64,000 nt of DNA from Chara braunii. Lineage: Eukaryota; Plantae; Charophyceae. The first letter of the stretch is position 1, and each line of letters starts with the position of its first letter. Shown here one piece after another: positions 6,798 to 53,597 of the stretch. The translations under genes and the position numbers were made by a program. The stretch is taken from the NCBI GenBank assembly GCA_003427395.1, contig BFEA01000013.1, forward strand, positions 1,159,891-1,223,890, in the 5' to 3' direction. Below the pieces are notes generated by a model. That model made no database searches, was not told the DNA's origin, and saw only the letters and a list, made by a program, of their open reading frames with translations.

Positions 6798-9700
6798 GCG
6801 TGGTGTAATGCGTGGTTGTGTTGTGTTGTTTTGTTTTGTTTTGAGTGTGTTTTTAATTGTATGTTTTCAGCATGGTGTAATGCGTGGTGAGTGGGATGTG
6901 TCCTAGTCGACTGACGACGAGTCGCACTTGGGACTTCAACCCCCCAATGCATCGGTGTCGAGCGCATCGGCTCCCGTCTTTTCTTTGCAAAAGGCAAGAG
7001 CCCTCCCGAATGTGTCACGTAGGATTATAAGCAATATCAAGATCAAGGAGACAACTCGGGGACGACGCATAGTTAACACCGCGAACCGCTGAGACGGGCG
7101 AGGTCGCGTCGTCCCTTCGCCATTCTAGCTAGGTGCGCCAATTGTACATCCCACGGTCCCCTACGACAGGATGGGTTCTCGCGGGGCACAACTTGCTTTC
7201 CTTCCCTAAGGGGTTGTCACCACCCTTAGTGGCGTATCCCTACCGAGCTACTAACCCACATGCGAAAGCTTTTAAATGCAGTCGCAGAGGTAGGTCAGCC
7301 GAGGGCGTTTGCTCGCTCGTTGTAGTATAGGTACGCATGGTTAAAACGCCTTGAACCCGGACATCGTCCGTTCCTTAGGGCGCTGATCTCCTAAGTACGA
7401 AGTGTACGCCGGTCGATTAGGACGGTCTCAACCAAGCGTGAAACCCCCTACTCAATCCTAGTCCCTTCAGACACTAATCAAAAGAAAGCTACGACAACCA
7501 CACATGGTTACCTCGAAAAGAGTCGACCGTAGTCGACAGGAATATACCCAGTCTAAAATGATAACTGAAGGAATCTTGATTATCATTAGATACATCCAAT
7601 AACACAAGAATAAGATAAAATTTGACCACCCCAGGTCGAACTTCACAAAACAATCATACAATCGCCAACGAGGATTTGGCTACCGACAATAATGCAGCCG
7701 ATAAGGTAATCGGATGCCTTAGTTGTGACTTGATGAGACGCGTTGCCAAAGGCAATCATTTCACCCTACCGCCGACTTAAGATTAGGCACGCACACTTGT
7801 CTCCATGCAGTGTTGCGTGTCTCACCCTTTAGGAAGTGGTCTGGGGTACTCCTCCTCGCCCGAGCACAAAGCTCGGATCTCAAAAGTCAAGTCGTCTCCA
7901 CCGAATCGACAAAGTACCCCCTCATAAAACGGTCCACTCTGGGTCGATAACGGGGTTGGCTCCTGAAGCAACGAGCCCCGGCCTCAGATGCTTCCTAGAG
8001 ATAGAGGATGTGTCCACTGCAAGTAGCTTTCAGTTATTCGTTCCGGGTAGCTTGGACAAAAAGAAATCAAAGGAGAAAAAGAACGAGAATCATTTGTTCG
8101 GGTATAGACAGATGAGGTCATTCGGGATAGAACAGGTCAGTCCTCGGGAAAAGCTAAGTCCTTTTGACCTCACTTACTTTATTTCAATCGCATTCATTTT
8201 ACGACGCGCACTGAATTAATCTTTTTCAAAACAACAAGTCATTTTTGACATGCAGACAGGTGAAAAGTAAAAAGAAAACGATCCTTTTCCTTTTCTCCAA
8301 TAGGCAAAATCAATCTCCCTGTTCAAGCATCTCTTTTACCTACCTGCACACCAATTTGAAGCAAACAAGTTTGGAAAAACAAGCAAAACCTATACCCAAG
8401 GTCATCCATTTCCATTCACATGCATGACTCGCACAACTTTCCTCTGCCTTTTCTTTCGAACATTCAAAATGAAGAGGGTCAAGCAAAGTGTAGGTTCACA
8501 CAGGTGTGAAGAGATGTCTGAGTTAATCAATCGACTGGCCGTGAGTGAAGTTTGATCCGGCCCACTCAAGAAAGCCTCAGGATAATTCCAATCAAAAGAA
8601 AATGACCGCCGTAGAATATGAAAATATGCGGTTTACAACTCCACAAGTTGTGGCCTCTCTCCTGAATCATGGTCCACGTCCTCTCTCAAGTACTCAAATA
8701 AGCAAGAGTCGGGTTCATTGAGAGAACTCCAGTGGAATAACCCTCCAGCAAGAATAAATCCCACATGATTCCAATGTTTCGGACAGTCCTAACGCAGTCC
8801 CATTGCACCACAACCTCCCAGACTGTCCCAACGCCATACCAACTTCACTACGTCCTTTAAGGATCCTTCCCAACCAATCGCAAGTCCATGCCGCCTCAAA
8901 TCACCCTGTCCACTTACAATAGTCATGTCATCATGCCAGTCCCGATCTCAAAATCAATCCCACCTGGTCACAAAATGGGCAGATGGTCCCAAATGATCCC
9001 AATGCAGTCCCATACCATTGCTCGCAACATTAGATGGTCCAGAACTCAAAACCGCTCACACCGCGCACTGCAAAAAAAATAAAGGTGGCCCTGGCTCAAA
9101 ACTACATGTGCCGCGTGCCCAATAATCACTGTCGTGTGCACTCACTTTGCACTTTCTTCATGCTGTCGGCCCACACACCACTGCCGCACAATCCCAAATG
9201 TGCACCAGTGCCAGCCTAACCTCCATGTCACATTGGAATCCACCATAACCGCTACGCACCACATAAAATAAAAATGTAACTACCGCTCGCCGCACCGTAA
9301 ATTCGGCAGCATTACTGCCCTGCTGAATACGTTGTCGTTGCCATGCCGTCGAACGGGCAGCACTTCCCCCTTTAAAAAAATTGTCGCCAAGTCAAAATTT
9401 CGGCAGCGTAACCCCACTGGATACACTGCCGTTGCCTTGCCGCTCATCGAACAGCACCTCCCCACACTCACATTAAAAAAGACATCGGTGGCGCACGGCA
9501 AATCCGACAGCACCTTCCCTTAGGAAGGTCTTGACGCCGTGGCAGCAGCATAACCCCTCTAAAATAGGTGTCGCTTGCCACACCGTCCGTCCCTAACGCA
9601 GCCTTACCGCTGCAGCACCTGCACAAGGGCGGGGCAGAGAGCCTCCAACCCTTGGCTATGGCTGCCTCTCTTCTCCTCCTCCAGCAGCGTCTCCCCTCAT

Positions 9701-10289
9701 CCTGCAGACCTGCACTTCCCCCACCAGCAGCACGTCCCCTCGACAACAACATGAAGAAGCCAGCCAACATTCATTCAAGTGAATGGCCCAGCAGCGCTGC
9801 CACAAGTGTGAGGCTGCTGGATGGAGTATTGGCTTTTATAGCCAGCTGAGGACTGTGGGCAGCTGCCTAGCCCACAATCCAAAAAATGGAGTCCAGCCAG
9901 GCCCTTGACATGAGCCGTGATGAAGGGCCAGGAATCTTGATATTCCCCTATGGGAACCAAGGTCTGCCAATTCCAGAAGCATCTGGCCTTTTTCCTTGGC
10001 CCTGCAGCCTGTTCAAAAAACGAACAGGCGCAGTTATCCCTACACATACACATACACGCATGTACCTAACCACGGTTGCGGCCACATTCGCGGCTGTTTC
10101 TCTTTTCATTTCCCTGTTTTTTTTTCTTTTTTTTTTTGCTTCTCTTTTCGGACAGCTTTTGGCTGATGCTCGTTTTGACCTTTGGGTACGTGTTGTGTTG
10201 CATTGCAGTATGTTTTTTTTTTTTTTTTTTTTTCTATTTTCCTAGGAGTGGCAATTGGTTTTCCAAAATGAGCAGCCTCCCCCAGGCCT

Positions 10290-10372
10290 AGTCATATCAC
10301 AGAGCCGAACTATAGTCAAGCTCAACAGGGTCTTCTTTACCCTGACGATTCTTCCAAGCCCATTCCCTTGCT
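10290..10372 (-). pseudogene. Degenerate nuclear LSU (25S/28S) rRNA fragment, 5' side of domain V
   Basis: Plus strand AGTCAAGCTCAACAGGGTCTTCTTT...GATTCTTCCAAGCCCATTCCCTTG is the reverse complement of the conserved LSU ...AAGGGAACGGGCTTGG...AAAGAAGACCCTGTTGAGCTTGACT. Confidence 0.85.
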
Positions 10373-10420
10373 AGGTCCTTGTACTTGGCACAACCAATTT
10401 GCTTGATACAAGCGCATAAG

Positions 10421-10553
10421 CAATCGGAAGAGCCAACAAAGGACCAGAAACACCGTCGCTATGAACGTTTGGCTGCTACAGGCCAGTTACCTCGTGGTGA
10501 CTTCCCTGACCCTCTTATCTTAAAGTCCTGAAATGCCAAAGAGTCTATAGGCG
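10421..10553 (-). pseudogene. Degenerate nuclear LSU rRNA fragment, domain V central-loop region
   Basis: GGAAGAGCC...CGTCGCTATGAACGTTTGGCTGCTACAGGCCAGTTA...GTGGTGACTT matches the reverse complement of LSU GGGATAACTGGCTTGTGGCAGCCAAGCGTTCATAGCGACG...GGCTCTTCC. Confidence 0.85.
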
Positions 10554-13102
10554 CCCGTTCCTGGGCGTTGGCAATGCCAGGTTCGAACGCCACTCGTTGT
10601 TACAGCCCAAACGGGCACTTACCCAAATCGCAGGAGTAACAAAGGGTGGGGGGAAATGGCGTGGCAATGCATATTTCCATGTTCCGACGGTAGATTCATT
10701 CAATTTTGCTCATCTTGTCGATGGAAGTAGCAGGAGCGCCAACCACGAGATTGGAGACTTACCTGTTCGTCAGCGTGTTGTTCATCATCATGAAACCTGC
10801 AGACAGGTAAGTCCCCTACCCCACACACACACATGAGGAGTAGTGTTGGTTTCCATGTTCTAACTGTAGATTCCTTCAATTTTGCTCGTCCCATTGATGG
10901 CAGCAGCAGTTCGTCGAAGCGAACGGGTGCCTTAGTGACCACAAACAAAAAGAAAACAAAGAAAATCTAAAAAGAAATAACGAATGTTAAAAATATAACT
11001 AAAGAAAATCTAAGGCGAATCTAAAACAATAAAACCTAAAGAAAATCTAAAAAAAGAAAGGAGAAAAATTAAAACGAAAAGAAAAAAAAACTTACTACGG
11101 AAAACGACCGCCCATTAAAACGCGCACCATCGTCTGAACTGGGATTGAAAGCCCCAGTCAGATCTCGCATCACCATCTTGCGCTGCCAGAACTTAGTATT
11201 AGTTATATTTTTATTATTATTATTATTTTTTCCTTCTTTTTTCGTTGGCAGCAGCCAACGGTCACGTCATGTTCGTGGGGAACCCACGAACTGTTGAAAT
11301 ACAGACCTGAGTTCGATCCCTACTGGGATTGAAAAACAATTTGGGCCATTTCTCGATTTATGCGTGCCATCCTTGCGCAATCCCATAGAATCCACGCGGC
11401 CTATCTCGGTCATGTGATCTTTGTGATCGCACGGTCGAGATGGACCGCGCCCAGATGCTCCTACTAAAATGGAGCTAGCCCATTGTAGGGCATTTCAGAC
11501 TTGATCCCGGTCTCTGTCGGGTGGCAATTCAATGCAATACCTACTGGGCTAGCTCCTATTACGAGAGCTAAAGCAACAGCCCTTCTATTTGAAGGGTTAC
11601 GCCCAGTAGGCCACCCTCCTGCCTGTGGCCCAGCAGGCTCTGCCTGCTTATGGCCTAACAGGCCTTGCTTGCAGGCCCCTGTCCCGTCGGTTGGCTGCGT
11701 GACCGCGGCTTGATTGGTCACCCAACCAGGTAGGCCTCGGCATCAGCATGTCGGTCCCCTGGCTCGGAGTCAAACCCTGCGGTCCAAAAAAAAAAAAAAA
11801 AAAGCTTCCTATTCCTCACGAGCCGCGGCCCAGGCTCTGAATCGTGCGACTGATATTATTTTAGGTAGAATAGGTTTAGCTTTGGCATTCCCATGTCCGC
11901 ACGCTTCTACGGCCTCGACAAAAGCGAAACACTGCCAGTTACTTCCGTTACTCTCGGATGCCACAAGCGTCCGGACTATACCTCGAAAACTTTTAGTCTC
12001 CGAGTCATAGGTCAGGTCTGGATAAACTTTTGACAAACATCAGTCTCATCAAGTCCTTCAATTCAACGAAAATTCGGACAGTGTCCGACGTTTAAAATCC
12101 CCGGCAAATACCCTTGTCAGGGTATTTGCCCCGACGGCATTCCCGGACCCCATTGAACGACGTCCCCGTCGTTCACCATCAAAAAAAGAAACATGGCGTG
12201 AAATGGGCAGCACAACCCCACCGAAAGCTCTGCCGCCATTGTACCAAAAAAAACGGCAGCACTACCCCATTGACAGTGCTGCTACCGCCGTGCCAAAAAA
12301 AAAAGGATAGCACCTTTCCCTCAAAATATTGACGGCACGCTGAACATTTCGGCAACATGGCCGCCGAATCAGCAAATTGACAGCACTTTCCTCTCATGTC
12401 CACAACACCTCCGACATCACGGGCGGCACTTCCGCTCACACTGCCACTTTCCACACGATCGGACCCTGACGCAGTGTGCCGGCCGCAACACCAACGCAGG
12501 GGTGGGGCAGTGAGCGCCCAACCTTCGGCTATGGCCTCTGCTCTCTCTCTCCATCTTTTTGCAGACCTCCACTCTCCTCTCCAGCAGCACTTCCTCTCCC
12601 TCGTCTCCGGCAGCAACCCCCCGCAATAGCAGCCAACCATTATTCACTCAAGTGAATGGCCCAGCAGCACTGCCACAAGTGTGTGGCTGCTGGGTGGAAT
12701 GCTGACTCTTATAGCCAGCTAGAAGCATGTGGGCAGCTGCTTTGCCCACAGCCAGGCAAATTCGTCAGTGCTCCTGGCCCTTGATCTAATCAACGACCAG
12801 GAGCTCAGTGCCTTGGGTTTCCCCTAGGGAAACCAAGGTCATCCATTCCCGGAAGCACGTGGTCTTCTCCACAGGCTACCTGCTCCGGGAAATGGCTGTG
12901 CCCAGCCAGACTGCAGCCTGTTCAAAAACGAACAGGCACAGTTTTATCACCACCTAGAACCCTCTACCCCCCTGCACCTATCCCATGACAGCGGCCACAT
13001 ATGTGGCCATTACTTTTCTTCAATTCCTCCCCCTTTTTTTTTCCTGTCCCTCGTTTCTCAGGAAGGGGCAGCTCATTTTTCAAAACGAGCTGCCTCCCTT
13101 TC

Positions 13103-13178
13103 TTCTAAGTCATTTCGCAGAGTCTAACCGGAGGCATGCTCAGCAGGGTCTTCTTTCCTTGCAATTCGCGCCCAAACC
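13103..13178 (-). pseudogene. Second, more decayed copy of the LSU rRNA fragment (unit 2)
   Basis: CTAAGTCATTTCGCAGAGTC...GCTCAGCAGGGTCTTCTTTCC lies at the position paralogous to 10290-10372. Confidence 0.65.
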
Positions 13179-13349
13179 TAAGTGCCAATGGAGCCTAGTT
13201 CAGGCGACGGTTTGCAGCCCGTTTTCCAAACAAAACGGGCACGGACTTCAGCCCATTAGGCAATAAAACAAAATAAAAAATGGGCGGTGTATTTTCTCCT
13301 GCCCTCGTGACATGTTTATTCGATTTTGCTCATCCTACACACTCACACT

Positions 13350-13402
13350 GACTGTCGATGTGTAGCCTCCTGATGAGTCGGTGAAAATCCGACGAAATAG
13401 TC
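13350..13402 (+). ncRNA. Type III hammerhead ribozyme
   Basis: GACUGU-C(13356) / stem I GAUG-UGUAG-CCUC / CUGAUGA (13370-13376) / stem II GUCGG-UGAAAAU-CCGAC / GAAA (13394-13397) / AUAGUC closing stem III. All core nucleotides are present; there is one U.C mismatch in stem I. Confidence 0.85.
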
Positions 13403-15289
13403 TACTGGTGCAACCAGTTCGTTAACGAACGGGCGCTCACGTGGGATGTGGTCCTACTGGCAACGAGGATCGGATCGAATGCCTGAATCTAAACGAGGTT
13501 ATGGAGATGTGCAGAAAATTGAGATTAAACTGCGTTGTTGCATCTCTGCATAAAACATAACCAGATTCAGGAGCTCGATCCTATCCTTTTTGCTAGTGGG
13601 ACCTCGGTTGTGGAAACAAGAAGGACGAAGGACATAAAGAAAAGGAAAGAATCTAAAACGAAATCCAAAAACAAGAAAAAGAATCTATAGAAAATCTAAA
13701 AAACTTACCTTTTAAAACAATCGCTCGAAAAAACGGGCAGCTGCGAATGACCTTTCCCCTCTGCATTTTGTTGCCTGCCAGTTTGCACTCACTTCTCTTA
13801 TTTCCTTTAGGGTTTTTTTTTTTTTTTTTGCCAATTCTGTTGGCTTAAAGCCAACGGTCACACCACGGCCCCCCAAAACACAACCCGGGGTTCGAGTCCA
13901 GCGGAAAGGGGAAAAAAAAAAAAAAAAAAAAACAACAACGAAGAAGAACATTCTCTCGATTTATGCGTATCAACCTTGTGTAGGCCATGCTACGGATTTT
14001 CGCCGTGCGATCTCAACGATCGTTCGATCGAAATCGGCCACGTCGGATTGTTCCCCGGTGGGCTGCTCCAAAAGGAGCTGGCCCAATAGTGTCATGACGG
14101 ATTCGATCCTAGTATCCGCTGGGTGAGAACCTGGCATGATATCCTACCGGGCTAGCTCCTATTTCACACCTAATAGGAGCAACCCTTCAGTATGAAGGGC
14201 TATGCCCAGTGGAAAACGCCAACCCATAGCCAGCAGGCCTCTGCCTGCTCGAGTCCTTAGGCTCTGCCTGCCTGTGGCCCTGCAGGTCTTGCCTGCTTGA
14301 GGCTTTAGGCACTGCCTGCCTGTGGCCTTGCAGGTCTCGCCTACTTGAGGCTTAACAGGCCTCACTTGCTGGCCCTGCCCCGTCGGTTGACCGCGTGACC
14401 ATAACTTTACTGGTCACTTAACCAGGTAGGCCTCGACATCGGCTTGTCGACCCCCTGGCTCAAAGTTTTTTCCTGCGGTCAAAAAAAAGAAAGAAAAGCT
14501 TCCTATTCCTCACGCGCCGCGGCCTCATACCTGGCGCGACCGTTCTTTTTAGCCTACTTAGGCTTTGAATCGCGCGCCCGACATTATTTTAGGTAGAATA
14601 GGTTTAACTTTGGCATTCCCATGTCCGCACGCTTCTGCGGCCTCAACAAAAGTGAAACATTGCCAGTTACTATCGTTACTTTCGGATGCTACAAGCGTCC
14701 GGACTAAAGCTAAAAAACTTCAACAAAAGAGTCGGACAACAATCATAGGTTCAGTATGAATGAACTTTTGGCAGGCAACAATCTCATCAAGTTCTTTAAT
14801 TCAACGAAAGAGTCGGACAACGTCCGACGTTTAAAAGTCCCCGACAAATACCCTTGTCAGGGTATTTGCCCCGACATCGGTTCGCGTGCGGGTCCGATAG
14901 AGGCGTGGGACCACGCGTACCCCCCGATGCTACAGCGTATGAGAAACGCACTCGGCTGGCCCACCTCTGCGATTGCAACTGATTAGCTTTCGTATTGTGG
15001 ACTGGTAGCTCGGCGGGGATACGGCCACCGGAGGGAGGTGACAGCTCCAGCAGGTGGAGGTAAGTTTTACCTCTTGTAGGCCCTATCCTGTCATAGGGCC
15101 TTGCAAGAGGTATGGCTGGCGCACTCGGCCAGAGCAGTTGCTGAAGCTGCATTAGTATCATGATATGACCAACTCCTGCGTGATGCGGCCGGGAGGGTCC
15201 CCTTGTGGGACCGATGCGCTTGACACCGTTTCACTCCCGCCGGCCTAAATTCGAGGTTCTTCGAGAATAACTCAATTTACAATAGGATC

Positions 15290-18200
15290 TCAACCTTTCT
15301 TCAGTCTTTCGTAGGCACGGACTATGTCGGGAGCAGTCTTTAGAAGTTCTGTCCGTGTAAACAAGCGATCGTCCTCTGACTCTTGGTAAGAAAATCTGAC
15401 TTTGTACTGTTTCTGTGGACGACCGCCACCTCCTGTTCTGAATTCGTCTTCATCTACTATGCGATCAATGTTGTACCTTCCGTCCATATCTGAAGGGATC
15501 ATCGATCTCCTTGACGAAAATTGTTCACTCCTTGTGCAAGGTAACAACTTTGATGCATGGAAAACTAGATATGTATGGAGGTGTGTCGGGATCTCTATCG
15601 TGTAGGACGGCCCATCATCTTTGCCCTTGACTTCTAGGACTGGCCACGGTCCTCTATATGCAGGCAACAATTTTTGTGAGATGTTCTCCTCAAGAGCAAA
15701 CTCTTTAGACTTAACCCAGACTAAGCCGCCTACTTGGAACTGTGACGGGCGACTATGTTTATTGGCTTGCTCTATCATCCTCTGCTGGCCTTTCTTGAGG
15801 TTCTCTACCACTTTAGCAATTTCTTTCTCCTGTTGTAATGCGAACTCCCTAGTGTCGGGCGGTAACCTCTGAATCTGGGCCCAGTTTAGTCCCTCAAACG
15901 GTCTGCGAGGTCTAAAGGACTTGTGTAATTCGCTGGGAGTGCGACAGGTGGCAAGGTGAATGCTGTTATTGTAAGCACTGGCTACCTTTGGGAGCATGTC
16001 GTCCCTGTTGACTTGATCGGGTCTAATGTACATTCTGAGAACTTGTTGCAGGATCTTGTTCATCTGTTCGGTCCGATTGTTAGCCTCTGGGTGGCTGTCA
16101 GACGACATCAACAACTTAGAACTGAATACTCTCATAAGCTCCTGCCAGTTCTGACTAGTGAACCTGGCATCTCTATCACTAACTATCGACAGCGGTAGAC
16201 CATGCTCACTGACCCAATGATCAAAGAACTTCTCTATCACTAGATTCGTACGTGCCTCGGCAGGCAACGAGACAAAAACTGCATATTTGGGAAATTTGTC
16301 AACTATAACCATGACTTGGCTCTTGCCATGCCTGCTCCTCACCCCAGTATCCATGAAATCAATCTACAGAATCTTCGGGTCCTGACGGGATAGGCAGGGG
16401 TCTGAGAAGACCCAACGGGGATCGCGTTGTAGTTTCATTGCGTTGGCACACCTTGCTACTACGCACATACTCTATACAGTCAACTTTCATGCCAGGCCAC
16501 GTTTAGGCACGCATCAAGTTGGCGAGTGTCGTTTGCCAACTGAAGTGCCCTTCTGTATCGTGACATTCCCCTAGGATCAAACTACAGATCTCCTCCTCGC
16601 TATTGGGAATGCATAACCAATCTACGACGTCTGTTTTCTCGAATAACAATCCATTAGTGGTGCGGTAGTGAGGTTCACTGGTTGGGTCCTCCTTGACTCT
16701 CTTAAGGAGGTCGCTATAGATAGGGTCCTGCCCATACCCATGTATAACTTTTTGCTGTAAGTCCGACCCGATATCTAGATAGTGAACTATAGTTCCAAAG
16801 TAGTTGGCTCTTCTACTAAGGGCGTTTACAACCACATTGTACTTCCCTTTGATTGGCTTGAGCTCAAAGTCAAACTGATCTATCTTTGCGGCCCACCTAG
16901 TACGCTTAGGTGTCATTTTGGCCTGCGTCTTCAACCACCTCAATGTCTCGTGATCTGAATAGACTTTGAAGTGCCTCCCAAGCAAGTAGTGTCGCCCGTG
17001 ATCTAATGCTTGCCTGAGAGCGTGAAGTTCTCTCTCATAGGTAGCCTCTTTCTTTAGTAGTCTGCAAAAGGGAGCAGCGATTGCAAAGAAGTTTCTCACG
17101 AACTTCATGTAATAGTTAGCCAATCCTAGGAACAATCTCAACTCAGCTAGTGTACGAGGAGTTGGACAGTCTCTGATCGTTGCGATCTTGCTGTCCTCAG
17201 GCTTTTTGCCATCACCATCTAAAACGTGGCCCAAGTACAGGATCTTTGTCTTGGCCCATTCACACTTATTTGCGTTGATCTTGAAATTTGCGTCACGCAA
17301 CTTTTCCTAAGTAAACAACTAAGTAAACAACTACAAATGTATCTAACCGCGACCTAAACAAAGCATTCATACAGCGCTGGAATTTGGTTGGTGCAATGGT
17401 TAGTCCAAAGGGCATCACTATAAACTCGTAATGCCCATATCTAGTCTTGAATGTCGTTTTGTACTAATCATCAAGGTGGACCTCTATCTGCTGGTACCTT
17501 GACTTCAAATCTATCTTGGAGAAGTACTTGCAGCCCTGCACTCGATCCAACAAATCATCTATACGGGGCAGTGGTTCAGGATTCTTTGCTGTAACATCGT
17601 TGAGACCCTGTAGTCAATGCACATTTTAAGCTCTCCCTCTTTCTTGGGGACAAAAAGAACAGGTGCTCCAAATAGAGACGAACTGGGCCTAATCCACTGC
17701 TTCTCGAGGAGCTCGTCTAACTGTTTGCGTAGCTCCTCCAACTCCTTGGGAGACATCCTATACACTGCTCCCTTGGGAGTCTTATTGCCATGCTCTATTT
17801 CAATGCGGTGCTGGATAGGACGCGGAACTACTCCTGAGGGAGCCTTTAACAGGTTGGCATACTTTTCCAGCAACTTGTCAATACGGGGGTTAGTTGGTTC
17901 CTCTTTGTTAGGCTCAGTGATAGACTTAACATAGGCCACAAAGACCCTGTTGTTCTAGTTGATCCTTCTTCACTAATAGCGCGCACGTGGGAGCACCGAG
18001 ACAACAATCTGCCAGCGGGTTATCTACTCCTGACACATGAAACAGGTGAGCCGTAGTGACGTCGCCTGAAGTACTAAGAAGCCTACACTCATGCTCTTTT
18101 AAACCACCAGTACACCCGAGGCTATTTGTACGAACCTGAATTTTCAATTTTGTCGAGCCTGGAAGCAACCGGTACCACCACGTGGAAAATTGAGGGTGGT

Positions 18201-25445: not shown

Positions 25446-25655
25446 GTCTTGCAAGCTGAGGAAGAGGAGAAAGACAGATTGCTAGCTGAAAAGGCTACCT
25501 TGGAGGAAGCAAATATAATGATGGAAGAAGCTGTACGGCAGCAGAGGAAAGACTTCCAGCGGACTAAGCAGACAATGGACAAGCAATTGCATGAGCTTTC
25601 AAGGAATATCCAGGAGAAAGAAGAGCTTATTCAGGAACTTGGAAGAAATGAGGCG
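25446..25655 (+). CDS. Internal exon of host kinesin-4 family (KIF7/KIF27/KIF4-like) gene, coiled-coil stalk
   Basis: tttgtag|GTC...GCG|gtgcgt, 70 codons, VLQAEEEEKDRLL...QTMDKQLHELSRNIQEKEELIQELGRNEA. Resembles kinesin-4 stalk motifs (FRA1 SMDKELHELNRRLEEKE; KIF7 RELAINIRMKEELIGEL, recalled from memory). Confidence 0.8.
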
Positions 25656-27514: not shown

Positions 27515-30500
27515 TGTCGAGTGCATCGGTCCGGCACCACACAAAACGGGGCGGGACCCTCCCGGTCGCGTCACGCAGGAGTCGGTCTGATCCTCGTCGC
27601 AAATACATAATGGAGCTTCCGCAAATCGCTCCGGCCGAGTGCGCCAGCCATACCTCTCACGAGCCCCTACGACAGGATAGGGTCTACGCGAGGCACGACT
27701 TACCTCCACCTGGGAGTTGTCACCTCCCTTCGGTGGGCGTATCCACGTCGAGCTATTAGTCCACAATACGAAAGCTAATCAGTTGCAATCGCAGAGGTGG
27801 ACCAGCCGAGGGCGTTTCTCGTACGCTGTAGCATGGGGGTACGCGCGGTTTTACACCTCTGTCGGACCCGCACGCGAACCGACATCTTGAGGGGGCAGAG
27901 GTCCCAAGCGCGACTCGTCGTCGGTCGACTATGACGCATCCCACACACCACGCGTAGTCCACTCTAAAGAATATAAAAATAAAAACACGCACATATCCAC
28001 GCACATATACAAAAACAACACAGGACAAACAATGTGACAACACACCGAGTCCCTTAGTAGCCATCCCATAACTTTTCGATACGGAAGTCTGATGGGCGTC
28101 GCGCGCTATTGGAGGGCGCGGTGTCCTGGCCCTCCTCTGCGTACCAAGTCCCTGCTTGGTATCAGTCTCTTGCTTCGATGTTGCGGCCTGTAGGCATGTT
28201 TCCGAACCTCTACGATCCCTAGTACCCGGGCTGTACCTTGACGTGGACCGGTCCGGTTGGTGCCTGCCTTAGCAAAAAGGAGGGTGCGCCACAGGAGTTT
28301 CCTTTGGTCCACGTAGGCTCGGCGCCCTGCTGTACAGAAGAGCAAGGACCAAGAAGAGAGAAGTGAAGAGAAAGAAAATATGGAAAAGGAAAATAAAAGT
28401 TAACCGTCAAGCCTATGCAATGACCTGAGCATCTGCTTTAATTCGGGAGGGGGCCAGCGGTTCAATTTCTGAGCCGCGGTCGCTGTCAGGTAACGTGGCC
28501 TGCTTGGAGTTGAAAGGACCGTCTGGTCCTAATGGTTGTGATCCAGGCCAGGTGCAGGGACGTGATAGGGGTAACCCGTGCGGACATTTCAACCGTGCAC
28601 TGGACTCCAATAGCTGTGTTTGGGGGTAGATATAGTGACGCCTGTAAAAGGAAAAGTGTAAAAAGGAAAGAAAGAGGGAAAAGGTTGAACGTCCGGCTTT
28701 AGATTTGCGCATGGACTCATATCGTTGTTCAGGCGAGGCTGCTGCGCAAGGGAATTTTGAAGCGCCATCTTTTCTTCTCTGCGGTTACTATAATAATTAT
28801 TATTATTGTTACTATTGATATTGTTAAATTTTCTTCAGGACCTTTCGGCCTGCTATTTCGTGGGAAGGCCAACGGCTAGAATTATGAGTGCAGTGGCAAT
28901 AGACTGGCCCGACCATTCTCGTATATCGCCGGAGGTAGCCTGTCCTGTTGAGCGCAGTGCGGTAGGACCCCAAAAGAGGGGCGACCTGCGGCCGCATCGG
29001 TAGGAAGCTCATCACCCCCTATAGGAGGTCATGAACCCCTTCCTTGCCATCGGACACGGGTACCCGAAAGAGATAGGCCGATGGTTCATTTTAAAGGGAT
29101 GGGAGCATCGGTCGGTGTCCCGTTATGGGACCACCGCGCTAAGCATAGCGGTCTTTTCGCGCAAAAGGCTGGCCTACGACTGTTGGCGTACTGCTGTTAA
29201 TTTTCCCTGTTGTCTGTTTGTTTTAACTCTTTTCTCTTAATGAAGTATTTTCTTTTATTTTTATTAATTGAATTTATTGGTTTTGATTCCTCGTCTAGAG
29301 CGCGGGGATCACAGTAAACAAAAATCTTATAAGAGGAAAAGGGGAAAGGCGTCTGCAAGCTAGGTTTGAGCGACCTCGCTATGCTGAGTACTAGCGTACT
29401 GCAGGTAGAAGGCTAGGCGGCCGTAGTGAACGGACGGGAGATTGCTTGTGTGCGTTTGCTTGCACATTGAGCGGATTGGTCATGTTTACTCTGGGACAGT
29501 AGACTGGGATGGGGCAAGGTTTGCTGAGAAAAGTCTGGCTATGGCAGTGCACGGCTATAGACCAGGCTATTGGTACCTCCAGACTCACTGGAAGCCCATG
29601 TCTGGGGAAGGGCCCTGGATTACGGTAATGCTCAGTTACGATGGGGGAGATGAACTGAGACTAAAGATTAATGTGGAAGGGGCTAAGGAGGAGGAAATGA
29701 GGACTAACCCGAAGCTGCAAGATGCTATTTCGGAAGCCAAGGATCGGGTCGAGCGACGCTGCAGGAGAGACGGGGTGACGGTGAGGATGCAAGTAACGGT
29801 CGCGTACCATGAGACAGAGACCTCGGCAGACACGGTGGACCGAGAACAGGCCCACCTGGACAAGGACTCAGGGGAAGAGAGTGAGATGAGTGAGGCCAGA
29901 GACCGGGAGACCGATCTCCAGCCTTGGAACAGGCCGGGCCAGGTTCGCAAGAACCACCCTCTGGCACAACCTGTGGAAGGCGGGCCCGAGGCCAGCTCGC
30001 GGCAGCGGAGTCCCAGAGGATGTGGGACAGGAAAGGTGGGAGAAAAAGGAAGGGTGTGTGTGTGATCATAACAAGAGAGAGAGAGAGAGAGAGAAGCCCC
30101 GAGAGAGGTCAACACGTGCAGGCGAGTCGCAGAGAAGGGGACGCGCACCTGTGAGGTGCTGTTAACATCAATTGTTTCCTCAACGTTCGCGCCTGACGTT
30201 TTTCGAGCATGCGGAACCCGCTGAGAGCGATCCGGAAATCAACCTGAGGCGGTGAAGAAACCAGCGTGGCGAGACTGAAAAACGTGAGAGTTAACTCGAG
30301 AAAGGAGGCGTGCACGAGAAGGGTGAGTGAGGACGAGATGGGATGCGCGTAAATGCAGAACGAGAGAGAGGTAGCGCGAGAGGGAGGTCAGACACAGAGG
30401 GGCACGAAAAGAGGGTCAACTCAAAGAAGACTGGACCGCAGAGGTGAAGGGTGTGCAGGTGTGAGACCAGGCATGGGAGACTAGTGATACAAGAGGAGAT

Positions 30501-33500: not shown

Positions 33501-35011
33501 ACCAAGGCAGAACCGCGTGGAAAGGTCTGCAGGCCTCCTAACTTTTGGCCTATCTGTTACTGCAATGAGCTATAGTAAAGGCATGGTATTGGTAACCTGT
33601 ACTCTACGTCGAGACAAGTCGAAAGGCTGGGAAGAGGAAATTATCAGGGATGTTTAGACCCGAGTTGAAATGATGAGAGGGCAATCACTGAAATTGGTGG
33701 GGGAACAGAATATCATCGAGTATACGATTTATCTTCATGGATCGGACGGAAAACTACACAGTACATATTCATTCACTGAAACTGTAGACCAAGCAAAAAG
33801 GGAGTGGGGATCATCAATGAGTCAATCAAAAACTATAACCTCCCAAGGCGGATTTGGTCATCTGGCACAGTGATCAATCAGTACACAGCCAGTGTTCGAT
33901 CACCGTTCTATTACTATCCAATCACCGTTCAGCCAGAGATCAACCGGTGTATAATCAGAGTTTGATCAGTAATCTATCAGTATCTCAGATGTCAGGTGCC
34001 AACCGGCAAACAACAGTTGCATCCAGTCATTAAGTGACTATTGTATAGTGACTTACTACTTCGGCAAACTTTAAGCAACATTCAATCAGCAACATTCAAT
34101 CAACGCTCAACTGATACCCAGTCAGCACCTTGTCATTCTTATATGTGCCAGAGATCAGTGTCAATTAGACAGTACGTTTGCCCAAAGATTTGAGAATCAG
34201 TCTGAACACCCTTCAACAACCTATGAGTACAGTCAGATCATCCTTAGTTCAGGAGACTGTCCTGACCAGTCTTAATCTGATCGCTCCTCAGGATATTTCT
34301 GGTATCGGTATGTCATCGCAGTCAGTTTCAGACAGGAAGACCTATCAGTTTCTGTGGTTCACACTGAGTTCGTCGGTGGTATCATTCATGACCTGAAGCC
34401 CTATCCGAAGAAAGGCAAGGAGACTCATAAGCACTTCGACTCTGTCTGGGCCTCAACAGCTAGTTACCTTGAAGAAAGGGAGGAGTTGGATAAGAGTGGA
34501 ACCAAACTGATTCGCAGCTTTGGGCCAAAACTCTACACGGACTATCCTAAGCCCCCGGTACCTTTCACTCTCACAGACGGCTCTTGCTGGGGTGACCTGA
34601 TTGATTTGGCCAAGAGGTACATCTCTTCTGCAGTGATCGATTACGAGGCAGTGACAGAGCCCTCCGAGTTCCCGCATTTCAGACGGGGCATTTTTTTCCA
34701 GCCATATCTCCTTACTCTATGGGAGGAATTACGTGTTATGGTTGACTTCCGTATCATGGGACTTGGGTGGAAGTGCTCGGAACTAGCATGCTTCAGGTGG
34801 CTCTACATTCAGAGGCCACAGGCTCAGAAAGTACGAGGACGTGGCTCGAGGCACAAGAAACGCACAGCGAAGGGAGAAACTGAGTGTGAGATTCAGAGGG
34901 TTGAGTGAGGACTCTTGACTGGTGCTGGCCGTGTTCCCTACATGTGTACTTTCTGAGGCTATTATGAGTTCTCATTCTTCCCTCATTGAACTTTGTGTTC
35001 TCCATCCGACA
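27515..35011 (+). mobile_element. Giant LTR-like unit G3 (TGTCGAG family) nested in B; right end tentative
   Basis: Starts TGTCGAGTGCATCGG; the first ~590 bp are homologous to G1/G4. The candidate end CCGACA at 35011 is where B pol begins. The flanks CCGT/ACGG do not form a TSD. Confidence 0.55.
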
Positions 35012-38000
35012 ACGGCAACTTATCGTATTCAAGTGGTTCTTCACGGGATTCAGCGCGCGAGTTCAACATAGAGGTATTGGACTCGCTCACGATCGAGGAT
35101 TTCGCATGGCTTCCTCTTTCGACCACGGGCCGCTTGCGGGGACTGCAACGCGCAGCATTATGCGCTCATCTTCACACGTATTTATCCTATGCACCACCAA
35201 CTTCGCCGACGGATGACGAAGTCGCGGTGGGGGACATCCTTGCGTATGTTACGAAGGTGGACCGCGAGTTTCGCAAGCAGCGGTACGATGACAACAACGC
35301 ACCGCTCCTCTATGTCCACATCCAAGTTGGGCAAGCGTCCTGCAGCGCTTTGCTGGATAGCGGCGCGTCTTGCAATTTTATGAGTCGGGCCTTTATGCAT
35401 TCGACATTAATTTGGGAATGCCTTGGCTTGCAAGTGTGGATCACATGGTCAACTTCCACAAGCGGACTCTTACCATTCGCGACGCCTTCGGCGCCGAAGT
35501 GTCGTGTACTATTCCTCTTCCGCACCCTTCGATTCGGTGCCAAGTATTGACGGCCAAGTCATTCCGGGCTACTTGTGCTTACGAGCAGCCCGACGAAATC
35601 GGCCTATGCTTCCTACGGACCGTCGCCGTAGCTGACTCTTCACCCACGAACTTGTCTTCGGACCCCCTTGTGGTGCGGTTGCTTGACGAGTTCGCCGACA
35701 TCTTCGAGTCACCTACCGGTGTGGTGCCGGATCGGTCGATCTCTCACGAGATCATTCTTGAGGCTGGTGCCGTGCCGCCGAAAGGTTGCATTTATCGCAT
35801 GAGTAAGGAGAAGCTTACGGTCCTCCGCTCGCAACTCGATGATTTGTTGGACAAGGGCTAGATGCGCCCTAGTAGCTCTTCATACGGAGCGCCAGTTCTC
35901 TTCGTACGGAAGAAGAACAAAGATCTATGATTGTCCATCGAGTACCGCAAAGTGGCGCAAGCTCAACGCGCAAACCGTCAAGAATGCGGGGCCTCTTCCT
36001 CGCATCGACGATCTTCTTGAGCGATTGGGCGGTGTGAAGTACTTCTCTAAGTTGGATTTGAAGTCGGGATACCATCAGATTTCGATCCGACCGAACGATC
36101 ACTACAAATCCGCGTTCAAGACGCGGTACGGGGATTTTGAGTGGGTGGTCGTACCTTTTGGCCTCACCAATGCCCCGACGACCTTTCAAGCGGCAATGAC
36201 CAACGAGTTCCGTGCGTTGTTGGACTCTTTCGTTCTGGTCTACGTAGACGACATTCTTGTCTATAGCCGCTCATTGGAGGATCATCTTGAACACCTTCGA
36301 CGAGTGTTGGAGACGCTCCGCCGCGCCAAGTACAAGGCCAACCGCGACAAGTGCGAATTTGTTCGGCAAGAGCTGGAATACTTGGGCCATTTTGTCACAC
36401 CGGAGGGCCTTAGCCCGCCATCGGACAAGATTCGAGCCACCCAAGAGTGGCCAGAGCCGCGGAACGTCACAGAAACCATTCGTTCCTTGGCCTTGCCGGC
36501 TACTACCAACGTTTTATCAAGGGATACTCGAAGATCGCGGCCCACTTGTCCAAGCTTCAATGCGAGGATCAACCGTTTGACTTTGGAGAGGATGTGCAGG
36601 AATCATTTTTGGATCTCAAAGCCGCGCTATTATCTGCGTAGGTCTTGCACATCTACGACCTGCTATTGCCTACCCACGTCACTATGCCCACGTCACTATG
36701 GATGCGTCTGGCTATGGCATTGGTGTCGTCCTCGAACAACACGATGGTGTGGACTGGCAACCGGTCGAGTACTTCAGCAAGAAAGTGCACGTCGTGCACT
36801 CCATTGATGATGCACGCAAGGAGGAGCTCCTCGCCTTCGTCCACACGCTCAAGCGGTGGGGGCACTTCTTCCTTGGTCGAATCCAATTCTGATGGGTAAC
36901 GGGCAACAATTCGTTGGTCTTCTACAATACCCAAGACACCGCCAATAGCACCATCGCCCGATGGATGGCTTTCACCGAGCAATTTGACTTCTTTCCCGAT
37001 CATATTTCGGGGAAGTCAAACCGTTTTGCGGATGCTCTTTCACGGCGTCCGGATCACTGTAACGCAGTCTACTCGACCTTCGAGATCGGCGACGACCTGC
37101 GGGACAGTTTCATCCGCGGCTACCAAGCCGACCTCGAGTTTTCCAACAAGTACGCGAATTGCTCCTCTCCTAATTCGGCGCCTTCTCACTACCGGATCCA
37201 AGAGGGGCACTTGCTTGTCCACACGCGGGGGAAGGACCTTCTTTGCGTACCAAGTGACTCTCACTTGCGTACACGGCTTCTTGGCGAGTTCCACGATGCT
37301 CCTGCCACCGGACACTTTGTAGTCAATCGCACGATTGGCCGACTTCCCGAGCGATTTTGGTGGCCCGGCCTTCTTGACGACGTCACATGCTATTGCGAGT
37401 CATGCGAGGTTTGCCGATGCTGCAAATCCTGCAACCATCGTCCGTACGGCAAGTTGCGATCGCCGAAGGGAAGCGATTGCCATGTTCATTACCGGGCCGT
37501 TCCCCAAGCACAAGACCGGTGTGGATAAGATTCTCACAGTGGTCGACCGACTCACCAAGTTTGCCATGTTTTTGCCTTGCCACTATCATGCCAAGGCACC
37601 GATGTTGGCCGAGGTTCTTTACGCTGGTTGGATTGGAACCAAGGGTTACCCCAAGGAAATTGTTTGCGACCGCGACACTCGGTTCATGTCCGATTTTTGG
37701 TTGGCGCTCATCAAACGATGGGGCTCATTTCTCAGGCCAGTTCGGCCCGCGACCCCCAAACCGATGGACAAACGGAGAGGGCGCATCAGACCGCACTGGT
37801 TGTCCTTCGCACTCTCATATGTCCCGACCAAAAGGATTGGGTTGAGTGGCTGCCTGTTGTCGAGTTGGCATACAACTCGTCCATCCACCCCGCTATCGAG
37901 ATGTCGCCCTTCGAGTTCGAGCATGGCTCGCCGGTCACTTCGCTGTTGGGCGCAATCATTCCACGAACGGCCGAGAGCAACGACCATCTTTTTTTCTTGC

Positions 38001-38606
38001 GTCGGATGAAAGAGCTACTTGTCAAGGCACGCGACCAGATGGCCTAGACGCAGCAACGCATGAGCCAACAGGCCAATCGCCAGTGTCTTCCTTGCCCATT
38101 ATGTGTCGGCGATCTCGTTTGGGTTTCCGCCGTGGAATTCAGCCTTGAACAAGATATCGCTTGCAAGCTGCTCCCGAAATGGATGGGGCCCTGGCCGATC
38201 GTGGCACCCGCTGGGGATGCACCCGAGGGACCCTCCTTCACTATTCAGGTGCCCGCCCACTTGCCCGTCTACCCGGTCTTTCATTGCTCAAAGCTGGCTC
38301 TTTACACGCCAGCGGAACATGACGATTTTCCCGGGCGATGATCGCAAAACCCACCCTCTATGAACGGTTTTCAAGAGGTCAGCGACATCATCTCCCAGCG
38401 GTGCTACGGCAACAGGCCAACCGAGTACTTGGTACACTTTGCGTACTGCAGTCACAGAGCTGACCGTTGGTTGACCCGTGTGGAACTCCAAGCAACAGCT
38501 CAGGATGTTCTCGCACGCTACGAACGCAAGATGCAAGGCAAGCCCGTATCTTCGGCATCCACGTTCCACCTTCAGATCGTCAGCTTCGCCCTCGCCCCGG
38601 CTTGAC
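35012..38606 (+). pseudogene. pol of element B: protease, RT, RNase H, integrase, chromodomain (disrupted)
   Basis: LLDSGAS; YFSKLDLKSGYHQI, PFGLTNAPTTFQ and YVDDIL; DASGYGIG; HDAPATGH...CESCEVC; IVCDRDTRF and PQTDGQTER; WMGPW; EVSDIISQR...EYLVHF chromodomain. Multiple frameshifts and stops. Confidence 0.95.
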
Positions 38607-48943: not shown

Positions 48944-51900
48944 TTATATTAGTAGTTCGGTTATTGTTGGCAGGGAGGTAGAAGCGAATGTGTGACGGGT
49001 CACCCACCCTTGATGAATGCGTGCATGCAGAAGTCTGTTGTTTGTGATGAAATCGATTATCAATCGCATGCCGTTGCACATGCCGTTTCGCATGGCGATG
49101 TTTCGTAAGAGAATAACTGGTGCACCTTGTTTAATGCAAAGGACATGGGGAGGAAGAGATGAGATGTCAATTGTATGAAGGGCATCGACAGGCACATCGA
49201 GGTAATTTTCGTTGGGAAGGAGTGTGTCGGTGTTGAGGCATGTGATAAAACCTCCAGGGAATTGCTCAAGGATTATCGAATTGAGCGTAGATACGGTGTT
49301 GTTTTTCGATGCGGGAATGAGGCGTTCAGCAAGCCAAAGCGGGTCGCGGGAATTTGTTTGCAGGTACGGGAATGTCCAAGCTATAAGTTGTTGTGTTCCT
49401 TCATATGGGCATAGAGGAGGTGGGAATTTGACGACGGGAGGTTCAACATGGGGGGGGGGGGNGGAATGTCACCGTTCATCGCCAAAAATCGAGGGCGAGT
49501 AGCATATGTCGTGAAGGGTTTGATAAAGCGCCTTGATATGAAATTTGTGTGTCATCGGTGCCTCGTCCCAAACGATAACAACTGTCATTCATATTAGTTA
49601 TGCAAGTGCAGATTGTTTTGAAATATCGAGTGTAGAGGTCGCGGTTGGGGGAAGAGGTGCTTTGAATCGAGAATGAAATGTCTGCCCGCCATGTAAGAGC
49701 GTTGCTGCGATGTCGCTCGATGCTACAGTAAGTGCGATGTGGTTTTGATTTTGTATATATGCGAGAATGGTATTGAAGCAGAATGTTTTTCCTGTTCCAG
49801 CGGGAGCATCAACGAAGAGACAGAGTGGCTCGTTATTGTCAGCGGCGTTCGTAACTCGAATGAAGATAGCATGTTGGGATGTTTCTTTGTAGTGTTTCTT
49901 TGTCATAGGACGTTTCATCATCAATAATTTGTGGAATGTTATGACGGCGGGGTCTTTCAGCCAAAGCATTTGCAGCATTTTGTTCATCAAGGGGCGGGCG
50001 AGCAAGGCCAACATCTTCGAGTTGTTTCCTTTCTTTTTGCAGACGGTTATCAATATCGAGAAGGACCATGGTCCTGATGAGGGGAAGAGGGACATCCGCA
50101 TCATCAAGATTTCTATTGAAGTCGTCTATCGTTTGTTGCCAATGTGTTTCGAATAATTCGGCAGGATCAGCTAGCGCACAGTGTAAAAGTATGTGGACAA
50201 ATAAGTTGTGAAACATCGCAGAGGAAGCAGTAAAGATTACATTTGGTAAGACGACATCAAATTGAGTGTTGTTGTTGAGCAGGCCAAGTGCTCGACATGC
50301 TGATTGATACGTCAGGTGAATTTCGTTATCAATTGTTTGAAGGCTCTCAAATGACGTGGCTCCTCGGGAGTGTGGCGACAAAAGAAGCATTCGGAGATAA
50401 AAGTGTCACCCGCATTGCGATGAATGGTGTGTATTCGTCCGATTGTGTTTGTTTTCCGTTGCCACAATATTCATTGTTTTTTCGGTTTGTTATATCGAAA
50501 CCGTTGGATCATATCTTTCAGGTTTTGTTTCATGGGGAATATTAAGATGTGTAGCGTTCCATTTGAACCACGTGGTAAGCTCGGTTTTCGATGGAGCCAG
50601 ATTTCTTAGATGTTGAGCATCTCTCGGTCGGAAATAAACCCGTTGTTTATTTTCTGTGTGTACAGGCAGCGCGAAAACGACGGGATATCGCTCGGAAAGA
50701 GAAAGTAAAAAATCCTCCAACATGCTTCGGACGCACCGATTGTTCGCATGTCTTGGAATGTTTGAATTTCATCGTTAGCATTTGTCATTTCGCCGACCAT
50801 AGCTCGATCCGGGCCTTTCATAATGTATTCGAACATGTATCGGTAAGTGGTGGTTGAGGCACAAATTTCGACATTTAGGTGACAACGATAACGTAAGAGG
50901 AGGAAGAGATTGTGGGGAATAACCCAAGAGTTATCGATTTCATTGGTTTCACATACGACAATTGTTCCTCCATTATCTCGTGAACGACGGCGGTATATGG
51001 GATAACTTGTTTTTCCATTCCATGTGGTGGGGTCGGAGAAGTCTTTTGGGAAATGATGCGCGCAGCGATCATTGTGCATGCAAGGAGCTTGCATATTGAA
51101 GGGGCCGCATGTATCATCTGTGCTAGCACGAGTTCACGGAGGGCCGGGTTTGTAGGGATTTCAGCGCAAACTATAGAATTTATTTGTTTAGGTGTAGAAA
51201 TTTTATGTTAGTTACTAAATGTAACAACCAAATGTGCATGTGGGAGACCATGTTTTTGGAATTCGATGACGTATATATATGCTGCAGTCGGACCAAATAT
51301 GTGTACACTACGAATGTAATGAACGAGTTGTTGTAAATAGCCTTTGAGAACACGTGTGAGGCGGTTTGGTCTGTCAGATGGTTGTTGGTGAGGGAAGAGA
51401 TAGTGTTCAATTTTCGACCAATGCGACTTGCAAGTGATTGTTATAACAAGATCAGGGGGACCATATTCTTCGACCGAGGCCATAGAATCTTGATATCGTC
51501 AATGCATATCTCCCGGGCTGCCGACGAATGTGGCAGGTAGAATAATATGTTGGCCAATATTTTGAGCGTTATCATATTGCATAAGGTGGTCGTGAACATT
51601 TTGATAGAGGTCAACGTGAATTTTGGTTTGGTGGAGCCTATGATACAATAATCGACCGTTTTCTATCTTTGCGAATGCCATGCATACATATTCTTGGAAT
51701 AATCGCGAGGCTCAAAATATTGTCGTCCATTCGGTGTCTCGGGTATTAAGATGGAAGGCATAAAATTCTCGTGCGGTGATTTGTTGCTCGGAAAAGTTTT
51801 CTTCGTCGTCGGTTTTGAGTGCCCAACCATCTTCGCCCGATGGGAATAAGAGAACGTAATGTAGAGGATCAAAAGTGTGATTGGTTTCATGAATTTGGAG

Positions 51901-52867
51901 AATACCTCCACCACGTCGGTGTATGACAATCTCGCGATTGGATGGTTGGTCGTGCACAAGTAAACATAGTTCTAGAAGATCGTGAGGCCTGTTGTATCGT
52001 CGTTTATGTTCGTTGATCGGACGTGCATCGGGATTGATGACAATATGTCGATTATGAATCATATCATCAGGAAGTTTTGTTGCATCTTCGTTCATGTTCG
52101 TTGATCGGGCGTGCATCGGGATAGATGACAATTTGTCGATTATGAATCATATCGTCAGGAAGTTCGGAAACAGTTATGAAATTTCGCACCCAACGATTGG
52201 ATTCAATTAGAAGGTCGTGGAGTTTTCGCAAAAGTTGTTTAATTTGTTGGACCGTTGCGAGCGGCATTTCAGGTGGGAGACAAAATCTAGTCAGTCGTAT
52301 GACAGTTGCATCATATTCATCTTGTGGATCGTATATATATAGTTGAGCGAAAGCACGCTCGCGACTGATATCTGGTATAAGCGGTCCAAGGTTTTGTTGC
52401 AGTTGACCAACAATTCTCACCATTCCAGTTCAACTTCTCGGAGGAGGTTGCGGCTCTCGGACAATTTGCGATGCAAGTTTAAGCGCGTTATTGAATTGTC
52501 GTGCACCCGAGCGCAATAATCGTGCTTGCACCGTGTCAATTTCCCATAAACGAAGAATTTGGTCAACAGGCGTGTCAGTTGCTGGATATTGCCATAGCAG
52601 TGGATGGATTTTTTGCCTTGTCGACAACAAAGAGTGGTCCACGTGTGCTCATGTGGCCACTTTTGTGCACGACAGTATGTGCATGTTGTTCTATTTTCGA
52701 GAGCACATATATCAATCGGTATGATGTCATAAATCGACTGAGGCGGTGTGTTCTCGAGCACCGTTTCGTCGGGCGAAAACATGATCACTATGCGATTGTC
52801 TGTATCATCGATAGCTCTTAGCGTTCGCATTTCGAGCTCTTTGTGCAGCAACACGTGACAATTCGTC
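48944..52867 (-). pseudogene. Helitron Rep/PIF1-like helicase (RepHel), fragmented
   Basis: FAQLYIYD; FDPLHYVLLFP; ILPATFVGSP; GPPDLVITITC; EFQKHGLPHAH (HUH motif); YPIYRRR; HLNVEIC...YMFEYIMKG; DAPAGTGKT (Walker A); WDEAPM; LPPHVLCIKQGAPVILLRN...CNG. Confidence 0.95.
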
Positions 52868-53597
52868 TGTGGAGAGGAGACGAAGGAGAGGCGAATATAA
52901 GAGTCACACAAAGCATACATACCGAAAACAGAAGACAAAATCACACGACAGGATAGCAAGAAGATGGAAACGACACACAAAATGTACTTGTGACAGTTAG
53001 GACCGAGCAATGGAGTCGGATTTTGAAATGGGTACATTGTGGGTGGAGGAGCCACCGAACAACGGTCACCGTTTTTGTTTGCAGAATGTTCAAATGCAGG
53101 TGCGCATTTGTACAACTCCAACATGTGAGGGTTCTCGCATAAGAATGAAGCGTTAAAAAACGAGGGGAAAAAAGGGGGGGGGAACCCATGATTGATCATA
53201 ATATTTTATTTTATTTTTCCATTTTGTGTGTTTGGCGTTCTTTGTGGACATTGAAAGGCAGGTTTCCATTGCAACAAGTGAGCCATGTGTTATAAGAAAG
53301 AATGGAGGGCATAACTATGCAAAAAATGAGGGGGGGAAAGACTGTAGGGTGTAAAGGGAAAAAAAAAAAAAAAAGGAGCTGCATTTTGATGTGTCGCGAA
53401 ATGTTCAAACACAGGTGTGCAAGGGGGAAAAAAGAAAAAGAAAAAGGGAGGTGCACTCGGGCGTGTCGGAGAATGTTCGAACAGAGGGCTGTCATCCATC
53501 GCGCCATCAGAACGTTTAACACAGAGCCGTGAAAATTTTACGTACATAGTTCATGTCCCAAAGCCTTCTGAATGACCTCCGTCTCTCTCTCTGTTTT

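Follow-up and report, generated by a model that had tools for sequence, protein, structure and literature searches.

Plant LTR retrozymes carry a hammerhead ribozyme in each of two LTRs of ~350 bp, together with a tRNA-Met primer site and a polypurine tract, in a total length of 600-1000 nt (Cervera, Urbina and de la Pena 2016; PMC4918200). The Penelope-like elements of animals possess minimal type I hammerheads (PMC7761336). For the charophyte Chara braunii, Craig et al. (2021; PMC8557442) describe canonical 3' hammerheads in high-copy elements dispersed genome-wide, which belong to two subclades, Chlamys-2_cBra and a PLE-X type. The 64,000-nt stretch of C. braunii contig BFEA01000013.1 analysed here (the window) contains a hammerhead motif of type III at 13349-13403 on the forward strand, as read directly from the sequence and as matched by Rfam family RF00008; no second hammerhead was found in the 64 kb. 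This motif is probably a decaying solo copy of an amplified type III hammerhead, predicted to be masked, apparently silent and situated in an unrelated insertion. The features of the locus are listed in Table 1.

Table 1. Features of the hammerhead locus and its surroundings. Coordinates are those of the window unless locus L007 is named.
Feature	Coordinates	Strand	Remarks
Insertion G2	6956-14876	+ (as listed)	7.9 kb, non-coding, TGTCG..CGACA ends; element strand unassigned
Module u2	9569-12135	+	Collinear paralogue of u3, without hammerhead
Paralogous sub-repeat copy	10674-10733	+	Keeps the flank and GTCGATGGAAGTAGC; without CUGAUGA..GAAA
Second paralogous sub-repeat copy	10850-10930	+	Without core
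Module u3	12442-14876	+	Bears the hammerhead
Upstream masking ("anti-hammerhead") arm	13322-13347	+	Predicted to pair with 13353-13389; contains the conserved ATTTTGCTCATC of the sub-repeat
Stem III	13350-13355 with 13397-13402	+	6 bp, including G13354.U13398
Cleavage triplet GUC	13354-13356	+	Predicted cut after C13356
Stem I hairpin GAUG-UGUAG-CCUC	13357-13369	+	GAUG (13357-13360) with CCUC (13366-13369); U13359.C13367 mismatch
Loop 1 UGUAG	Between stem I arms 13357-13360 and 13366-13369	+	
Core shared with abundant hammerhead family	13364-13401	+	At least 85% likeness; read and contig alignments extend from 13363-13366 to 13397-13403
Catalytic core and stem II, CUGAUGA / GUCGG-UGAAAAU-CCGAC / GAAA	13370-13397	+	Core positions all intact
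CUGAUGA	13370-13376	+	
Stem II GUCGG/CCGAC	13377-13381 / 13389-13393	+	Perfect 5 bp; loop 2 UGAAAAU
GAAA	13394-13397	+	
Exon-like open frame, kinesin-4-type stalk	25446-25655	+	12 kb downstream of the ribozyme, same strand
U2/U6 snRNA matches in L007	L007: 49431-49608, 18609-18722, 19746-19859	-, -, +	

The sequence is confirmed as a genuine type III hammerhead ribozyme motif. Its core conforms to CUGANGA...GAAA with the pairs G10.1-C11.1 (G13377-C13393) and A15.1-U16.1 (A13397-U13355); the NUH triplet precedes stem I, both this stem and stem II end in loops, and stem III is open, with a G.U pair at 15.2-16.2. Direct reading reproduced every base of the core, GUC triplet, stems and loops given in the earlier note, and covariance-model alignment upheld its identification of a complete type III hammerhead. 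The Hammerhead_3 search that it had proposed as a check gave a mixed answer: the match is significant and runs end to end (model positions 1-54 over 13349-13403; E-value 6.4e-8 when 251 nt are scanned and 2.3e-6 when 9 kb are), but its score of 41.1 bits is below the curated gathering score of 48.5, which is why the Rfam scan of the whole 64-kb window at gathering thresholds was empty and the match surfaces only under E-value thresholds. Both this shortfall and the frequency with which the loose pattern CTGATGA..GAAA occurs at random (three found versus 1.4 expected) would suit a chance match unrelated to true hammerheads. That explanation has almost no probability left, given the covariance-model E-value of the 9-kb scan, the three helices all in register, and the near-identity over 38 nt with a hammerhead family that is abundant in this genome, a likeness that holds even in stem II and loop 2, where the sequence is unconstrained; for practical purposes the E-value and the family likeness refute it. 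A search of metagenome and viral contig collections for the exact 28-nt core gave no matches.

The family to which the core belongs was recognized by mapping two raw oligo-dT RNA-seq runs (X6 and X7, each sampled at 6-12% and of a kind that misses small or non-polyadenylated RNAs) and two contig sets, one of DNA and the other presumed to be of RNA, at 85% likeness onto 11400-13930, a stretch picked to exclude two U6-like segments. At this likeness or better, the reads that match the shared core number in the thousands and the contigs in the hundreds, and BLAST matches the window ribozyme to a copy in another C. braunii locus (L007). The DNA word depth of the bin 13355-13439, summed over contigs and thus not equal to a true copy number, is 328,266, compared with 8-13 for contigs identical to the locus and 32-1,517 for the bins just upstream and neighbouring. 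The RNA depth of the same bin is 190/357 in run X6 and 436/855 in run X7, and the core is found in poly(A) RNA at ~150-220 reads per million sampled. One or more retroelement families have probably amplified the type III hammerhead to roughly ten thousand (~10^4) copies.

Because nearly all of the mapped reads fit only in part, with loose ends on both sides (1,370 of 1,376 in run X6 and 3,653 of 3,726 in run X7), and because the RNA depth across the flanks at 13185-13354 is only 0-1.7 in the two runs, this RNA stems from other copies, and the window locus is essentially silent in the sampled runs. Many RNA reads cross the cleavage site; read starts and ends have no hot spot, a result that is uninformative on cleavage of the family RNA, the 5' parts of which do not align to the window. 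No back-joints specific to the locus were present in the two oligo-dT runs, a type of library that detects circles poorly.

The loose ends disclose the sequence that surrounds the core in the family: on the 5' side ..CAGACUGUC GAGG UUCAA (as DNA, ..CAGACTGTC GAGG TTCAA) or alternatively ..ACTGTT GAGGG TTC, and on the 3' side CAGUCUG.., with the variants CAGTCTGTCAC.. or, dominantly, TTGTCACAGCCCCTCGTTTGTTGTCC... When these flanks are joined to the window core, the minimum free energy (MFE) fold of both consensus variants is the three-way hammerhead (-21.3 and -20.4 kcal/mol), with a perfect GAGG/CCUC stem I and a perfect stem III of 8-9 bp; the consensus is a composite of read-derived ends and the window core, with only two real copies at hand. 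Paralogues with GAGG/CCUC in stem I had been predicted from the window sequence, and the loose-end consensus agrees with this prediction.

Relative to the family consensus, the window copy has four stem-weakening changes and no compensating ones: G to U in stem I, which places a U.C mismatch where the consensus has GAGG; C to U at 15.2, which yields a G.U pair; and the loss of two outer pairs of stem III (U13349/U13403 and C13348/A13404). In predictions that are thermodynamic and leave aside tertiary contacts and kinetics, the hammerhead fold of a window 55-mer is at -8.6 kcal/mol versus an MFE of -10.4 kcal/mol, and the MFE fold of a 61-mer (-14.6 kcal/mol) is not the hammerhead. In the genomic context the MFE is -29.0 kcal/mol, versus -16.9 kcal/mol with the hammerhead enforced, a penalty of ~12 kcal/mol on the active fold; GAUGA of the core pairs with 13330-13334 at a probability of 0.94-0.99, and stems I and III have probabilities near zero. 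According to these predictions, the window copy is trapped in a different hairpin, formed with the flank on its upstream side. Since the masking arm is transcribed first, the inactive hairpin should be favoured during co-transcriptional folding too. Natural viroid hammerheads are likewise masked by alternative folds. The window copy most likely does nothing today, as judged from these folds and its silence, but a short transcript may be active in vitro, the core being fully intact and the copy scoring 41 bits versus 16.6 bits for the degenerate ribozyme of L007.

The carrier of the family was sought in eight C. braunii loci (216 kb) collected through homologues of a gypsy integrase; no hammerhead was found in six of them (127 kb). 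On the minus strand of L007 (~50075-49730), a family hammerhead copy is followed by a tail of ~75 nt and then by (TA)n, after which come a second copy that is truncated inside the ribozyme and has the same tail, (TA)n, an inverted copy of the tail, and (TA)n again. The tail is the same as the dominant RNA loose end of the family, and the ribozyme is located ~70 nt from the 3' end of the element. Published accounts characterize Penelope-like elements by partial tandems, by neighbouring 5'-truncated copies in inverted orientation, and by insertion into microsatellites; arrays within (TA)n, with copies in partial tandem and in inverted order, would give the family members just such a layout. On the strength of one locus, L007, and of PMC8557442, the carrier looks Penelope-like rather than LTR-retrozyme-like. 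Judging from the literature, the tandem hammerheads may serve to trim unit-length RNA from read-through transcripts. Neither the window nor the fetched C. braunii loci yielded a Penelope-like (GIY-YIG/RT) open reading frame. L007 also contains snRNA matches (U2 at 99.5 and 98.8 bits; U6 at 59.2 bits), and one of its U2 copies directly adjoins the hammerhead/(TA)n cluster.

The window core is near-identical to a family with the Penelope-like layout of L007 and in this respect probably resembles the Chlamys and PLE-X elements of C. braunii as described in PMC8557442. The window copy itself differs from those elements in that it has no 3' tail, no (TA)n, no tandem or inverted copies and no nearby reverse-transcriptase frame, and is enclosed in an unrelated TG..CA insertion with a target duplication. 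The family tail motif is absent from the 64-kb window, so the copy is not a simple 5'-truncated insertion. Its flanks consist of sub-repeat sequence of the surrounding insertion, common to copies without a ribozyme; the window copy would thus have kept just the ~60-nt ribozyme, within an unrelated non-coding composite insertion.

Like their counterparts in the Penelope-like elements of animals and in non-LTR retrozymes, the hammerheads of the Chara family occur in a pseudo-LTR or tandem arrangement at very high copy number. These counterparts are minimal type I motifs that work as dimers and in many cases have no stable helix III, whereas the Chara family has a full three-helix type III ribozyme with stems I and II closed. 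The window locus is itself ordinary; its family is of more interest. In this streptophyte alga, a type III hammerhead with all three helices has reached roughly 10^4 copies, occurs in poly(A) RNA and is arranged in a Penelope-like manner, which bears on the origin of the type III retrozymes of plants and of viroid-like RNAs. This is only partly new, because canonical hammerheads in Penelope-like elements of C. braunii appear in PMC8557442; set against the animal type I hammerheads, the type III motif in a Penelope-like setting may be a variant worth noting.

The insertion in which the window copy resides (G2) is flanked by a 4-bp TCGG target duplication (6952-6955 and 14877-14880). Deletion of 6956-14880 restores an R-type repeat that matches the reverse complement of 27540-28000 at 83% identity across 443 nt, and this continuity across the junction identifies 6956-14876 as a bona fide insertion. 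The insertion interrupts an LTR-like repeat and lies next to remnants of a gypsy pol gene on the minus strand, which include an integrase frame (15290-16354, minus strand) with the Pfam domains rve and SH3_Tf2-1; the best protein matches of this frame are all from C. braunii, the top one at 81% identity. The first 2.6 kb of G2 are unrelated to the remainder. The remainder contains two collinear direct modules (u2 and u3), 70-77% identical and separated by 306 bp, and ~880 bp of the 3' part of the module recur in L007. Both the 7.9-kb TG..CA unit and the duplicated module around the ribozyme had been proposed in the earlier note; the former stands as a true insertion, and the latter as a diverged pair of 2.4-2.6 kb. 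The genomic depths of the segments of G2 are very unequal, from which it follows that the unit is a mosaic of repeats.

The modules have features of their own. Fragments similar to U6 snRNA (11335-11380 and 13938-14037, both on the minus strand; 26 and 23 bits, below gathering) occupy homologous places in u2 and u3, antisense to the hammerhead, so that the module contains a captured piece of U6. In the 9-kb Rfam scan, 10290-10553 gave no match to LSU rRNA at E-values up to 0.1, a scan that short pieces can escape. The 3' end of the module (11995-12164, homologous to 14740-14876) is of high copy number, with a DNA depth of 30,000-60,000, and contains the hairpin AAATACCC-TTGTCA-GGGTATTT followed by GCCCCGAC. 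Because 132 contigs diverge right after 12135, this region marks where a widespread element ends.

These structures raise the possibility that the motif is the working hammerhead of a giant element of LTR-retrozyme type, with the modules as its LTRs, from which a large non-coding RNA would be released and circularised for retrotransposition. The likeness to plant LTR retrozymes extends to the type III ribozyme, the non-coding host element, the TG..CA ends with a 4-bp target duplication (PMC4918200), the direct repeats (here two collinear modules around a 306-bp spacer), and the masking of the ribozyme by a complementary strand, the upstream arm being reminiscent of the way in which retrozyme and viroid RNAs hide the ribozyme in rod-like folds. 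Instead of two LTRs of ~300-400 bp that each have a hammerhead, G2 has modules of 2.4-2.6 kb with only 70-77% identity and one hammerhead in 7.9 kb; the sister module and two further copies of the sub-repeat lack the core even at an E-value cutoff of 10. An LTR pair for G2 was looked for by local alignment of its two ends and discarded, the alignment being no better than that of shuffled sequence; the ends of G2 are dissimilar, and so it is not an LTR-internal-LTR element. No tRNA-Met primer site (TGGTATCAGAGC or TGGTATCAGA) was found in 6900-15300, and the ends of the 306-bp spacer are not purine-rich. With the locus silent in RNA-seq, no back-joints on it, and stem damage left uncompensated, a giant retrozyme is an unlikely identity for G2, and the notion of a working retrozyme LTR was not sustained, there being one ribozyme copy, no LTR pair or primer site, a disfavoured fold, next to no transcription in the two RNA-seq runs, and a carrier family that looks Penelope-like.

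How a decaying solo copy came to lie in G2 may be approached through the sub-repeat around it, the 5' flank of which (..ATTTTGCTCATCC..) occurs in three copies in the window and two in another locus, L004. CUGAUGA..GAAA is missing from four of these five copies. The core-less copies retain TC(G/A)ATGG.A.TAGC, a stretch similar to GUC together with stem I; the flank that the sub-repeat conserves is complementary to the ribozyme core. Whether the core is ancestral and was lost from the sister copies, or was acquired secondarily, is about an even choice: a ribozyme together with its mask, lost from most copies, is compatible with the data, and recombination at AGCCTC is equally compatible. A more far-reaching and rather improbable interpretation is that the G2-type sub-repeat (..ATTTTGCTCATCC.., hammerhead and two hairpins) represents a separate family of non-coding elements, integrase-mobilised, with TG..CA ends and 4-bp duplications, that originally bore a type III hammerhead and a complementary arm of its own and was a charophyte relative or forerunner of the plant LTR retrozymes. 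If this were true, Penelope-like elements and the G2-type family would share a ribozyme, and modules would have been exchanged between two classes of retroelements at the base of the streptophytes.

The sub-repeat copies without a ribozyme carry GGAGACTTACCTG (10755-10770, plus strand; L004 at ~17780, minus strand), the complement of the consensus 5' splice site, identical to the motif at the 5' end of U1 snRNA. Directly on the 3' side of the ribozyme, 13403-13427 comprises two perfect small hairpins, ACTGGT-GCA-ACCAGT and the palindrome TTCGTTAACGAA. The sequence TGGTGCAACCAG at 13406 resembles the complement of a tRNA 3' end and is a candidate primer-binding site, but is more simply explained as one arm of the hairpin ACTGGT-GCA-ACCAGT; tRNA genes were sought in the window and in every fetched locus, without a match. 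Just downstream, 13440-13609 is a second very abundant transcribed short repeat (DNA depth 56,000-112,000; RNA depth 16-100), the window copy of which differs from nearly all reads at ~10 positions.

The earlier note had placed the ribozyme on the sense strand of a kinesin-4 gene, and the strand assignment holds: the exon-like frame at 25446-25655, searched alone, matched three proteins (best E-value 5.7e-9), all of which have the KIF21A-like domain of Pfam PF25764 that characterizes a kinesin-4 stalk. Since no kinesin motor motifs are present in any plus-strand frame of the window, the N-terminal exons are probably upstream of it, and the balance tips towards position 13350 being intronic in the kinesin-4-type gene, on its sense strand. 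These circumstances would permit an exapted ribozyme that cuts the pre-mRNA within a giant intron and so regulates the gene. Such cutting is speculation. The depth around the locus is ~0, the motif belongs to a transposon family with thousands of copies and is not a conserved single-copy element, and its active fold is disfavoured. Moreover, cleavage of introns by hammerheads need not stop their co-transcriptional splicing. A regulatory role is very unlikely because the copy is silent, mis-folding and transposon-derived, and exaptation in the intron has hardly any probability. Like the amniote intronic hammerheads HH9 and HH10, the window motif may lie in an intron of a host gene, in sense orientation; unlike these single-copy, ultraconserved type I ribozymes, it is a transposon copy in decay that bears no mark of conservation. 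The window copy being probably dead, the cutting of kinesin pre-mRNA and the giant retrozyme LTR are both unlikely.

Other mobile elements are represented elsewhere in the window. Open reading frames of Helitron type occupy 49601-53205 on the minus strand, with a PIF1-like helicase domain at 49601-50125 (E-value 2e-23) and further long minus-strand frames upstream of it. Two more pol regions of gypsy type are located on the plus strand at 34276-38044, where an RVT_1 domain was recognized at 35839-36807 (E-value 1.6e-33), and at 62495-64000; their segments 36365-37691 and 62714-64000 are 76% identical.
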